Assembly: GCA_033442325.1 (NCBI GenBank)
Contig: JAWQFM010000001.1
Location: 1,046,779 to 1,110,778, forward strand
Source of the DNA: Salpingoeca rosetta
Lineage: Eukaryota > Protista > Choanoflagellata
Length of the DNA stretch: 64,000 nt
Reading direction: 5' to 3'
Part shown: one piece after another, positions 29,127 to 33,097 of the stretch
How positions within the stretch are numbered: the first letter of the stretch is position 1
Layout: every line of letters starts with the position of its first letter
Program-made: the position numbers and the translations under genes
Notes under the pieces: model-generated
Told to the model about the DNA's origin: nothing
Database searches by the model: none
Seen by the model: the letters and a program-made list of their open reading frames with translations, nothing else

Positions 29127-32100
29127 ATGTCGTCGCACGCGCTGCTGCGTTCCAATCGCGTCGCTGACGAGACAACATCACCGCCGCCGCCGCCGCGAGG
29201 AGGGGAAATTCCATTGTCGGCCCTGCCACCGCCGCAGCCGCGAGCCATCGTGGCCACGGACCAAAGCAATGACGACCGCCGCCGCGGTGCAGAAGCTCTG
29301 GAAGCTGAGGAGAGCGAGAGAGCGGCCAGTGCCGGTGGTACACTAAATGGCTCTGCGGTCGATACGCTTGGTACAGGTGATGACCAAAGCAGGCGAAACC
29401 AGCGGAAGAGCTGGCTTGTGTCCAGCACCAGCCGAACATCGAGGTCCAGGATCAGTGCATCTTTCGCTCCTGCAGCAGCCAACCAGCACACAACTGCCGA
29501 GGATGAGGAGCTGCTACAAGGAGCAATAGCTGGCGCACACGTGCCCAACAACAGCATGGTGAGGCTCGCTGTGTTTATTCGCCCCCCCCCCTCTGCTCTG
29601 CTCGTTTGCCCTCTCCTGGTTTCTTTGTTTTGCCTGCAGGCACGTCCAACTCGTTGGCGGAGCCCAGAGGCCAAATTTCGATATCTTGCGTGACTGTCTG
29701 CCCTGCGCGACCGTGCGCTTTGTTTTCTGCCTCTCAACCTCCCTGCCGTTTTTCTGCCGGTCCGCTCGTCTCTCTGCCTGTCTGCCGTTCCGCTCGTGTA
29801 TCTGCCTGCTTGCCAGACCGCTTTCCCGCCCTCTGCCCATGTGTCTGTCTCACTGCGACTTCCTTCTGGGTTGACGCTCAACGTTGCCGTGGCCGCCATT
29901 TGTGTTGTTGTGTGTCCCAGGTTTCCCTGGGCCAACTCTTGCGGCCGCAGGTGTTTGATTATGCACCGACTGCCTCCGCAAGTGCAAAAGGCCTGGGTGC
30001 TTTGCCTGCTTGGGCCATCTGCGCAGGTATCGTACTTGCGCAGGCAGTGCTCTGCCTTGCCATCAGCCTCTACCTGTCGGAAGCTGTTGGCTGGCGCGCA
30101 TCCCGCGCGACCCTTTTTGCCCTCAAGACAGGTGTGTCCTCATGTGCTGCGCGCATACGTGTGTCTCTGTATGCGCTTGGCCATGCACATGCGTGCGTGT
30201 GAATGTGCATGTGTATGCGATTGTGTGTGTGTGTGTATTTGCAAACGCGGGCAAATTGCTGCTTGCCTGCATGCATGCTCACGATCCGTTTTGTTTTGTG
30301 TGTGTTACGCTGTGTCTGGTGTTCGTGCTTGTTCTGGCGCTCTGTACCGCCGTTGCCCCATGAACATCAGTGTTTTGGGGTGATCCAGCTGTACCACTCG
30401 GTGAGGAGGCTGCTCTTGCCACGTTGCGAGCAACACCAGCTGCGCACGCACCTCTGTTGCATTTCTTGTGTCTGTGTGGGTGCTGGTGTATGTGCTAGTA
30501 GTGCCGGTGTTGTTGCTTGTGCTTGTGTTTGTGGTGGTACATACATATGGTGGTGCTCTATTCTCCAATTGCCCGGTCCCTTTGGCGATCTCATGATGGG
30601 TTGTCAATCTCATGACGCTTTGTTTGCCACTTTCATCATCATTCTTTGCGTGCTCCACACTGACAGGGCAGCAGTTGGATGATGGCGACACCGCCATCGT
30701 GCTGGTCTTCTCAGTGTTGTCATACGGTACGCAACCATGCTGCGCGCAGCAAAGGGGTGTATTTGATTGCACATTGCTTGGCCTTTCTTCGGTTGCGTTC
30801 TTCCCCCTCTGTGTGTGTGTGTATTTGTGCTGGTGCACCTCATTTATCATCCCGCCTTCACATCCTGCCGCCATGCCTTGATGTAGCACTCAGCGTGGCG
30901 CTCCTCTGCTGGTTCGCGTATCGGGGAGCTCGGCTGTTACTCGGATACAACCTGAGCGTGAGTGGAGTCTCAACATTGGAGTTGTAGCACCGACACAGGG
31001 CTGCTATCCTGGCGACACAGACTCGCCTGTTTCTTCGAACACAACCTGCTCATTGACACAACACCACGGCCTGTAGACGCTATCCATGTGCCCCCCCCCA
31101 CACACACACACACTCACTCACACACACACACACACACACACACACACTCACACACACACACACACACACACACACACACACACACACACACACACACACA
31201 CACTCACACACACACACACACACACACACACACACCTTCATGTAGTTGCATCACGCCCGGTTGCGCCGAGCATTTCCGGGTCTGCCCACACCTGCGGCAG
31301 AGCAGCAACGACAAGGCTGTGTTGTTCGAGTCCTTCTGTCATTTGTGTCGTCTCCGAGGGCGATATGGGTGCTTGGTGGTCTCTCCCTCCTATGCACGGG
31401 TGAGTCACGTGTTCATGCTCGGCGCTCGAAGCAAGCACCATGCACGGTGTGGGCTTGGTTGTTTTGTGAAGGGCCTTCCATGGGTCAAAGCGCTGGTTAT
31501 TCACACCTGTAACAACACCTGGTGTCCGTTTGTTCCACGATTTCCTAGCGCTGTTCCCGGTCGCTCTTATGCATGCAGACGACTCGTTCACATACCCTGA
31601 AGCGCTGATGTGGTACGTGGCCTCCTGTGCTGACACGGTTGCGCCTGCACTCTGTGAAACTGCCGATGCGGACTCATCCATTTGCAGCCACATGAGCGCA
31701 TCGCATCGCATATCTTCCGACTGTCATCCACCCATGCCAATCAACTCCTGGATTTGTTGTTTGCTCCCTCCACTTTGTTGCTCCTGCCTTGTGCTTAGGT
31801 GCATATCTGCGGCAACCTCACTGCCAACAACAAGTCACCCGAGTTCAAACGCGGGCAACGTGATTGCATGCATTCTATTTGTGGTGAGTTCATTCAATGG
31901 TGTGACTGACAAGTGGCTATGGTGTGGCAAGTGCTGTGGCAAGTGCTGTGGCAAGTGCTGTGGCAAGTGCTGTGACCCAATGTAATATGCAAAGTGAGGT
32001 TGTAGAATCGCATGACAACACCCTCGTTCGTCCAGTCTGTCTTCCTTTGGTGCTCCTGATGTGACTTGTCTTCCCAACAGTACTCAAGTGCCACGTTCAT

Positions 32101-33097
32101 GTGCTTCCACTCCTGCCGTCCATGGTTGGGACTGTGCCTCCCCCTGCAGTTGCTGCTTGTATTTTGGGTGTTCGCCTTGGCCTTGCTTCTTGCGCGCGTA
32201 GTTCGCCGCGCCGTTCTCGAGCTTGGGCCCCCACCCGCATTCAAAATCGTCTCTGTGCGTCCTGGGTTGCCGCATGCTCATGCCTTGCATGTTTGCCCTT
32301 GATTTTGCACAGCAAGGCGATTCTTGATTCTTGTGCATGGTAGACAGTGTATCGGTTCCAGCCGTTGCTGGAGCCTTTCTCTGCAGCCTCACTGTTGCCT
32401 GCATGCACCCCCATATGTTGCTGCTGCTGCTGCTGCTGCTGTTGTTGTTGTTGTTGTTGTTGTTGTTGTTGCAGCGCTTGCATGGGCGATTGGACGGCGG
32501 CACCCTCATCAGCAGATATGATTGGTGCGCCATGTCTCTTATTGCTACACCACAGCGTCACGTCCTGTTGCATTCGAACACTGCGCTTCTTCCCACACTG
32601 ATTGGTGCGCTGGGTGCGAGTGAACCTGTGCACACACGCCAGGCTGCGGTGTTGCGCTGACGAATCTGGTCTTTGCCCAATGGTGTGTGCTTGCAGGTAT
32701 GCGCTCGTGCTGGACGCTGCAGGCTTCATGCACCCCGAAACCAAGACCATGTTGGACGAGGTAATACAGAGAGGAAACCGAGCGGGGAGGAGGGGTGCGT
32801 GGGGCCGTTCGGCACGCTGGGGGTGCTTCACATGTCTGCATGCCCGTGCGTGCCAGGTGCGTGCCCGCACCATACTCGAACATCTGGGCATGATAGTCAT
32901 TCACACTCCACACACTGCATGTGCACCAATGCACACGTGACCAGGTGTTCCAGAAGTGCCTTACTCGGTCACCAACGAGTGCCACAACAGCAGCGGACGT
33001 TGTGCCCTGGAGCGTGCTTGTTGACGTGTGCTCCAACCCTCACCAGAACCAGGGCGCACAGGCGAAAGACACGCGGGCTGAGGCAACCCAAGTGTAA
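29127..33097 (+). CDS. Divergent 4TM/2P two-pore-domain channel-like protein (plant TPK/KCO-like architecture) with non-canonical filters, about 492 aa, 12 exons
   Basis: Exons 29127-29558, 29921-30131, 30371-30400, 30667-30726, 30887-30957, 31246-31399, 31549-31612, 31799-31883, 32150-32254, 32475-32524, 32697-32760, 32945-33097 (all GT-AG, 1479 nt, open frame). Order: TM1, P1 (GWRASRATLFALKTVFWGDPAVP), TM2, TM3, P2 (SFTYPEALMWCISAATSLPTTSHPSSNAGNVIACILFV), TM4, then an EF-hand-like tail. Confidence 0.65.
31921..31973. repeat. 12-bp tandem repeat (TGTGGCAAGTGC)x4 in an intron
   Basis: Read directly. Confidence 0.9.

Follow-up and report, generated by a model that had tools for sequence, protein, structure and literature searches.

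PTSG_00555 of the choanoflagellate Salpingoeca rosetta encodes a probable, highly diverged TPK-like pore protein without the potassium filter motif in either pore loop

We analysed a stretch of 64,000 nucleotides (nt) from the choanoflagellate Salpingoeca rosetta (assembly GCA_033442325.1, contig JAWQFM010000001.1, positions 1,046,779 to 1,110,778 of the forward strand; hereafter the window), and all coordinates below are window positions. The gene PTSG_00555, which lies on the + strand at 29127-33097, is a real, spliced and weakly expressed gene. Its product has the layout of a tandem-pore potassium channel, with four hydrophobic helices (M1 to M4) and two pore-loop-shaped segments (P1 and P2) in one chain, and neither segment carries the K+ channel filter: P1 reads TVFWGD and P2 reads TSLPTT. 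The product likely belongs to the K+-channel pore superfamily. We favour the reading that PTSG_00555 encodes a very diverged TPK-like member of the pore fold, expressed and restricted to its lineage, and most likely a non-conducting or regulatory subunit; the chances for and against this more specific proposal are about even.

Results

Both pore loops lack the potassium filter motif

TVFWGD occupies residues 214-219 and is encoded at 30128-30384, across the junction of exons 2 and 3. TSLPTT occupies residues 347-352 and is encoded within exon 8 (31815-31832). Neither fits the K+ channel signature T-x-G-[YFL]-G, and neither pore loop contains GYG, GFG or GLG. Compared with the canonical filter, P1 has Phe in place of the first Gly and Trp in place of Tyr, and it keeps the Thr, the Val, the second Gly, the Asp and a P..PLG motif; an acidic DDGD follows. 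In P2, Gly, Tyr and Gly are replaced by Pro, Thr and Thr, and the pore-helix features and the Pro and Gly after the filter are retained. An earlier reading of the same DNA, made from the letters alone (the sequence-only reading), had proposed that both filters are rewritten and that P2 keeps its pore helix and its post-filter Pro and Gly. Both proposals agree with our results, the latter through the KcsA and LmK alignments described below. No hinge glycine was seen in the sequence of M2 or M4.

The two glycines of GYG in a KcsA-type filter permit a backbone shape that points the carbonyls into the pore. Because filter positions are taken by Phe and Trp in P1 and by Pro and Thr in P2, the canonical four-site K+ filter cannot form in PTSG_00555.

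Topology and domain architecture

Hydropathy places the helices at residues ~174-199 (M1), 234-262 (M2), 297-327 (M3) and 362-390 (M4), downstream of a low-complexity stretch (residues 1-165) that is probably disordered. An AlphaFold2 (AF2) model of residues 150-450, made without an alignment, contains two short helices, at 204-217 and 335-347; a loop of 11-12 residues leads from each of them to the next long helix. The confidence of the model is low, with a predicted local distance difference test (pLDDT) score of 51. The order of secondary structure in this 301-residue model is M1, short helix, loop, M2, M3, short helix, loop and M4, with three further helices at the C-terminus. The model places TVFW within a helix, and P1 is the weak half. 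The linker between M2 and M3 has 6 Lys/Arg to 1 Asp/Glu and the segment after M4 has 5 to 1, and the P loops are neutral to acidic. This positive-inside pattern suggests that both termini are cytosolic and that both loops face outside, as in K+ channels. Hydropathy, secondary structure and charges together give two pore units and four transmembrane helices in one chain, the arrangement expected of a TPK, and the layout of four helices and two pore loops described by the sequence-only reading holds in both the hydropathy and the AF2 secondary structure.

That reading had called the protein TPK/K2P-like. An extracellular cap formed by a long M1-P1 loop is the hallmark of K2P structures. In PTSG_00555 only a few residues link the end of M1 (about residue 199) to the start of the P1 helix (about 203-204). 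This linker is too short for the ~55 residues of a cap, and the cap is therefore absent. Since there is no M1-P1 cap, the layout is TPK-like rather than that of an animal K2P, and the TPK half of the label, which also draws on a degenerate EF-hand-like pair, is the better one.

Queried alone in the ESM atlas, the C-terminus of PTSG_00555 has EF-hand clusters as neighbours (0.90, 146 features; template modelling (TM) score ~0.5 on residues 398-474). It looks like a degenerate EF-hand pair, and no EF-hand match was found in it by Pfam or in the PDB. The first EF-hand-like loop, R-L-D-G-G-T-L-I-S-R-Y-D, lacks the Asp at position 1 and the Gly at position 6, which makes control by Ca2+ doubtful. 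In the architecture of TPK channels, an EF-hand domain comes after two pore units (PMC8619664, PMC10963239). The Ion_trans_2 neighbours of the core (see below) and the EF-hand neighbours of the C-terminus suggest that PTSG_00555 has this architecture.

At the other end of the chain, residues 95-115 of the public protein record (P0001; window ~29409-29471) form an Arg/Ser-rich stretch within the disordered N-terminus (RKSWLVSSTSRTSRSRISASF; SRTSRSRISASF). Plant TPKs bear an N-terminal 14-3-3 or phosphorylation site, and the Arg/Ser-rich stretch may be comparable to such a regulatory site.

Sequence comparisons with potassium channels

A phmmer search of all PDB sequences with the P2 unit returned only K+ channels (KcsA variants and LmK, E 0.06-0.1), and the KcsA and LmK alignments are in register from the pore helix through the filter to the inner helix. 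P1 alone had no match in the PDB. When P1 and P2 were combined in a two-row profile, all matches in the PDB (13 out of 13) were K+ channels. MthK was the best (E 0.0096), with VFWGD aligned over VGYGD and PAVPLG over PSTPLG. We also built an independent pore profile from 80 prokaryotic MthK-like pore loci. Aligned to it with hhalign, P2 gave a P-value of 0.0041 and P1 a P-value of 0.029, both in register. Shuffled sequences (150 of each kind) reached the observed score of P2 not at all when shuffled fully and once when the hydrophobic pattern was kept; for P1 the score was reached 8 and 5 times, respectively.

The feature neighbours of the core in the ESM atlas are all Ion_trans_2 clusters of diatoms, haptophytes and plants, several of them with an EF-hand (0.91, 181/256 features). 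The P1 unit alone was also placed with Ion_trans_2, both by features (0.88) and by atlas structure (TM score 0.65). As a channel pore unit, P2 is much better supported than P1. We infer homology to K+ channels, and regard it as likely, because several weak tests, partly independent of one another, point to the same family and the same domain architecture.

Structural comparisons were made with the low-confidence AF2 model. Nearly all of the top 50 Foldseek matches are K+ channels, with TWIK-2 in first place and a best E-value of 0.19. VIA-align of residues 304-395 gave a Z score of 6.3 for KcsA (root-mean-square deviation 4.3 Å over 88 residues) and of 6.0 for TREK-1 (residues 203-308). We discounted the structural matches as evidence of kinship, as a Z score of ~6 is background for helical hairpins.

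Identity and search for relatives

The RNA-supported product of 492 residues is letter for letter the public protein P0001, S. rosetta PTSG_00555 (EGD72532.1, XP_004999101.1, UniProt F2TWT6), which is named 'hypothetical protein' and forms a singleton cluster. Its public annotation has exactly the same exon structure. The sequence-only reading had described the gene as fragmented and unrecognisable in the open-reading-frame track; in the public annotation it is not hidden. The literature that we searched holds no mention of PTSG_00555.

Compared by phmmer with 1.84 billion cluster representatives, exon 2 matched only P0001 itself, at 100% identity. A word search with the 253-residue open frame around exon 1 returned nothing, the 492-residue protein being outside the length window of the search. 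The word searches cover only proteins of 270-861 residues that share exact 5-mers and our metagenome scan requires exact 8-mers, and distant orthologues could escape both. Judged by these searches, PTSG_00555 is an orphan with no close family in the databases searched.

Gene model and splicing

We rebuilt the gene by reading window positions 28800-33400. The model has 12 exons on the + strand (Table 1), an ATG at 29127, a TAA at 33095-33097, GT..AG boundaries at 11 of 11 introns and consistent phases throughout. At the local base composition, the chance probability of an open frame of 492 codons is ~1e-7. RNA evidence was taken from Logan contigs of runs X4 and X5, which come from two different studies, and from the raw RNA sequencing (RNA-seq) runs X15 and X16.

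Joints for introns 1, 2, 3, 4, 6, 7, 8, 10 and 11 are listed by the spliced X4 and X5 contigs. The splices of introns 5 and 9, which bear repeats and have no listed joint rows, were derived from contig arithmetic. Record 4 of X4 (781 nt) corresponds exactly to exons 2-9, with 164 nt between the pieces of exons 2 and 6 and a further 255 nt beyond exon 6; in record 13 of X5, 112 nt remain for exons 10 and 11 together. The simple repeats in both introns are the reason for the missing joint rows. With RNA support for all 11 introns, the phase-consistent 12-exon model of the sequence-only reading is borne out. That reading had named skipping of the 30-nt micro-exon, which encodes the P1 'filter', as one outcome that would refute it. 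The micro-exon is retained in both X4 and X5, with both flanking joints present. RNA also places the acceptor of intron 6 at 31549 and not at 31579, which adds 10 in-frame residues and lengthens M3.

Three introns contain repeats. Intron 5 has a (CA)n tract of ~160 nt (31084-31244), intron 9 has a (CTG)n(GTT)n tract (32415-32473), and intron 8 has ~4 copies of a 12-nt unit (GGCAAGTGCTGT; 31918-31975).

Table 1. Exons and untranslated regions (UTRs) of PTSG_00555, in window coordinates
Feature	Position	Strand	Residues	Content and support
5' UTR	from ~29057	+		X4 record 2 and X5 record 9 begin at 29057 and join 29558 to 29921
Exon 1	29127..29558	+	1-144	Start codon; Ser/Arg/Pro-rich N-terminus, probably disordered
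Exon 2	29921..30131	+	145-215	M1 (residues 174-199) and start of P1 helix, ending in ...ALKT; RNA joints
Exon 3 (30-nt micro-exon)	30371..30400	+	215-225	VFWGDPAVPL, the P1 'filter'; joints in X4 and X5
Exon 4	30667..30726	+	225-245	Acidic loop GQQLDDGDT and start of M2; RNA joints, hydropathy
Exon 5	30887..30957	+	245-268	Remainder of M2 and basic cytosolic linker; joint 30726 to 30887, intron 5 via X4 record 4
Exon 6	31246..31399	+	269-320	Basic M2-M3 linker and first part of M3; contig piece begins exactly at 31246
Exon 7	31549..31612	+	320-341	End of M3 and P2 pore helix SFTYPEALMW; X4 joints 31399 to 31549 and 31612 to 31799
Exon 8	31799..31883	+	341-369	End of P2 helix, TSLPTT, loop SHPSSNAG, start of M4
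Exon 9	32150..32254	+	370-404	M4 and basic post-M4 segment; joint 31883 to 32150; hydropathy 3.2
Exon 10	32475..32524	+	405-421	First EF-hand-like loop (RLDGGTLISRYD), without the position-1 Asp; intron 9 via X5 record 13; joint 32524 to 32697
Exon 11	32697..32760	+	421-442	Helices belonging to the EF-hand-like domain; X4, X5 and two raw reads of X16 carry the joints
Exon 12	32945..33097	+	443-492 and stop	End of the EF-hand-like domain and tail; joint 32760 to 32945
3' UTR	to at least 33274	+		RNA contigs extend to 33274

Expression

The few X16 reads on the gene have their first mate on the minus strand, as expected of a + strand mRNA in a stranded library. In X4 the spliced forms are 5-10 times deeper than the contigs that cover introns. 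Low-depth contigs of X4 and X5 span introns 1, 4 and 8 (29531-29949, 30705-30855 and 31945-32149); they stem either from pre-mRNA that has not been spliced or from trace genomic DNA in the libraries.

A pile of raw RNA-seq reads lies at 30076-30239, in intron 2, at a depth of 19-26. It has loose ends on both sides of 30219-30221, where a GT repeat adjoins. We rejected the pile as expression of PTSG_00555. Its reads fit only partly and continue into unrelated sequence, so another locus is their source.

Neighbouring genes

Upstream lies a well-expressed neighbour on the minus strand (28600-28950), with an intron at 28724-28925 (CT..AC on the + strand) and many molecule ends near 28946-28948. 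An open reading frame at 28267-28743 has no Pfam match. Downstream, tail to tail with PTSG_00555, the minus strand carries a DEAD-box helicase gene (Helicase_C at 33605-34246, E 6e-7; DEAD at 36213-37256, E 7e-16). Neither neighbouring gene gives PTSG_00555 a functional context.

Discussion

Several results weigh against the favoured reading of PTSG_00555. Pfam Ion_trans_2 (PF07885), the comparison suggested by the sequence-only reading, had no match even at E 10, whether the query was the full-length protein, its core or one of the two units; Pfam Ion_trans reached 8.6-9.8 bits, short of the cut-off of 25; and single exons and 60-residue P1 and P2 segments gave nothing in Pfam. The PDB-wide matches, at E 0.0096-0.1, are exclusively to K+ channels. 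A canonical pore hidden Markov model (HMM) from the 80 MthK-like loci scored about 0-3 bits, because the motif that is absent from PTSG_00555 dominates it. BLASTP found no alignment between the two pore units, and MAFFT aligned them at 24% identity in a doubtful register. K+ channels make up nearly all of the Foldseek top 50, but the best E-value is 0.19, the model itself has a pLDDT of only 51, the P1 unit, when modelled by itself, is a plain hairpin of two helices that has no distinct pore helix, and a structural search independent of Foldseek gave Z scores of 5.7-6.0 for channel pores and 6.0-6.9 for generic helical hairpins. A search for relatives of the core (residues 160-440) at E 1 returned only the protein itself. 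The P2 core (residues 320-368) had four word-sharing candidates and no match other than itself at E 10, and the exact-8-mer scan of metagenome contigs found no relative. The odd filters are thus known from one sequence only, with no relative by which to gauge their conservation or purifying selection. There are almost no reads within PTSG_00555 in the raw runs X15 and X16, where its expression is very low. The candidate was picked by eye for its channel look, which makes the directed P-values optimistic. In no test was an E-value below 0.001, and none is significant database-wide at 0.001.

One rival reading is that PTSG_00555 is an orphan membrane protein with 4-6 helices, unrelated to channels, whose resemblance to a K+-channel P loop is coincidental. 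The lack of an E-value below 0.001, the empty Pfam searches, the score of ~0 bits with the canonical pore HMM, the absence of a detectable internal repeat and a structural search that does not discriminate speak for a chance likeness, and selection by eye would inflate the directed P-values. However, the weak tests agree in pointing to a single family and to a specific combination of pore, pore and EF-hand, the alignments are in the correct register for both units, and the topology and the charge pattern fit a channel. We regard a chance likeness as quite improbable. A decaying duplicate, i.e., a former two-pore channel gene that drifts without function while still being transcribed and spliced, we consider more improbable still. 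It would account for the degeneration of all three signature elements (both filters and the EF loops), for the orphan status, for a raw RNA-seq coverage near zero and for a G+C content at third codon positions (GC3) of 0.62, barely above the intron GC of 0.54. On the other hand, long neutral drift is unlikely to have left a 492-codon frame open over 12 exons and every splice site intact (~1e-7 by composition), and the extreme divergence implies that a long time has passed since duplication. The hydrophobicity of the helices and the charge pattern have also been kept.

The next most likely reading after a non-conducting or regulatory subunit is a wide, non-selective pore. PTSG_00555 would then be a working channel with a new type of filter, wider and shorter, whose dimer conducts as a leak for cations non-selectively or for another ion. 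The intact open reading frame over 12 correctly spliced exons fits such a channel, as do the pore-helix features and post-filter Pro and Gly of P2, the Thr, Val, second Gly, Asp and P..PLG kept in P1, and the acidic DDGD after it. NaK and CNG channels are precedents for non-selective conduction through altered filters, and relaxed selectivity has been proposed for altered TPK filters (PMC8619664). NaK and CNG, however, retain the first filter glycine, which is lost in both loops here (to Phe and Pro). The missing hinge glycine in M2 and M4 and the lack of orthologues that would show the odd filters to be conserved also count against a working channel, and we think it unlikely. A functional two-pore channel that has no GYG-type glycine pair in either loop and has acquired a new selectivity, for non-selective cations or for an ion other than K+, is rather less likely than that.

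We thus favour a diverged TPK-like protein that does not conduct or that regulates other subunits. The chain would begin with a disordered cytosolic N-terminus, continue through M1-P1-M2-M3-P2-M4 and end in an EF-hand-like tail, also cytosolic. If TPK and K2P channels are a guide, two subunits would form a pseudo-tetrameric pore; we infer that selectivity or conduction has been lost in it. Such a 'dead' or regulatory subunit may act alone or together with canonical choanoflagellate two-pore subunits, and KCO3 provides a precedent.

If the kinship is true, PTSG_00555 is a tandem-pore relative that lacks the K+ signature in both loops, and probably the Ca2+-binding loops as well, yet is an intact spliced gene. 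It could then show how far the pore fold tolerates replacement of its filter and whether 'dead' channel subunits have a part in regulation. If it is instead a functional channel with a new filter, it would be an example from nature, among the closest unicellular relatives of animals, of a tandem-pore family member whose filter has been replaced wholesale. These implications come from one orphan gene, expressed at a low level and with weak homology evidence, that might just as well be a drifting relic. S. rosetta is genetically tractable.

Comparison with known systems

The TPK/KCO channels of plants, algae and protists are the closest in layout. Like PTSG_00555, they have four transmembrane helices and two pore loops per chain, a short M1-P1 linker, cytosolic termini, an EF-hand-like C-terminal domain and a similar size, and the nearest ESM clusters have this architecture. 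PTSG_00555 differs from them in that it has no G[YFL]GD in either pore, no Ca2+ ligands in its EF loops, no Pfam Ion_trans_2 or EF-hand match and no detectable relative, and in that it occurs in a choanoflagellate. In the second pore of algal TPKs the motif varies, from GYGD in some to no motif at all in others (PMC8619664).

Animal K2P channels (KCNK; e.g., TWIK-2 and TREK-1) have the layout of four transmembrane helices and two pores in common with PTSG_00555. TWIK-2 is the first Foldseek match (E 0.19), and M3-P2-M4 of TREK-1 (residues 203-308) superimposes on residues 304-395 with a Z score of 6.0, which is not above background. In contrast to these channels, PTSG_00555 has neither the long M1-P1 loop and cap nor GYG, GFG or GLG. 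Canonical K2P genes are reported, without analysis, from most choanoflagellates (PMC11287247).

The best sequence matches of PTSG_00555 in the PDB are KcsA, LmK (Lmo2059) and MthK, with E-values of only 0.01-0.1. Its P2 helix TYPEALMW resembles TYPRALWW of KcsA and NYPDALWW of LmK, and VFWGD..PAVPLG of P1 resembles VGYGDYSPSTPLG of MthK. Unlike PTSG_00555, these channels have one pore domain per chain, assemble as tetramers and carry a canonical TVGYGD filter.

Proteins with the K+-channel fold that became non-conducting or non-selective after changes in the filter or pore include KCO3, NaK and CNG (PMC7757853, PMC9822992). The non-selective NaK keeps TVGDG (PMC9822992), whereas PTSG_00555 has lost the first glycine in both loops. 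Arabidopsis KCO3 is a TPK-derived subunit, reportedly inactive, that is still physiologically relevant (PMC7757853). KCO3 lost a whole pore domain but kept GFGD, whereas PTSG_00555 keeps both loops, each without the first glycine. To our knowledge, the known cases are of two kinds: at least one canonical pore is kept in algal and tobacco TPKs and in K2P variants, and a whole pore domain has been lost in KCO3.

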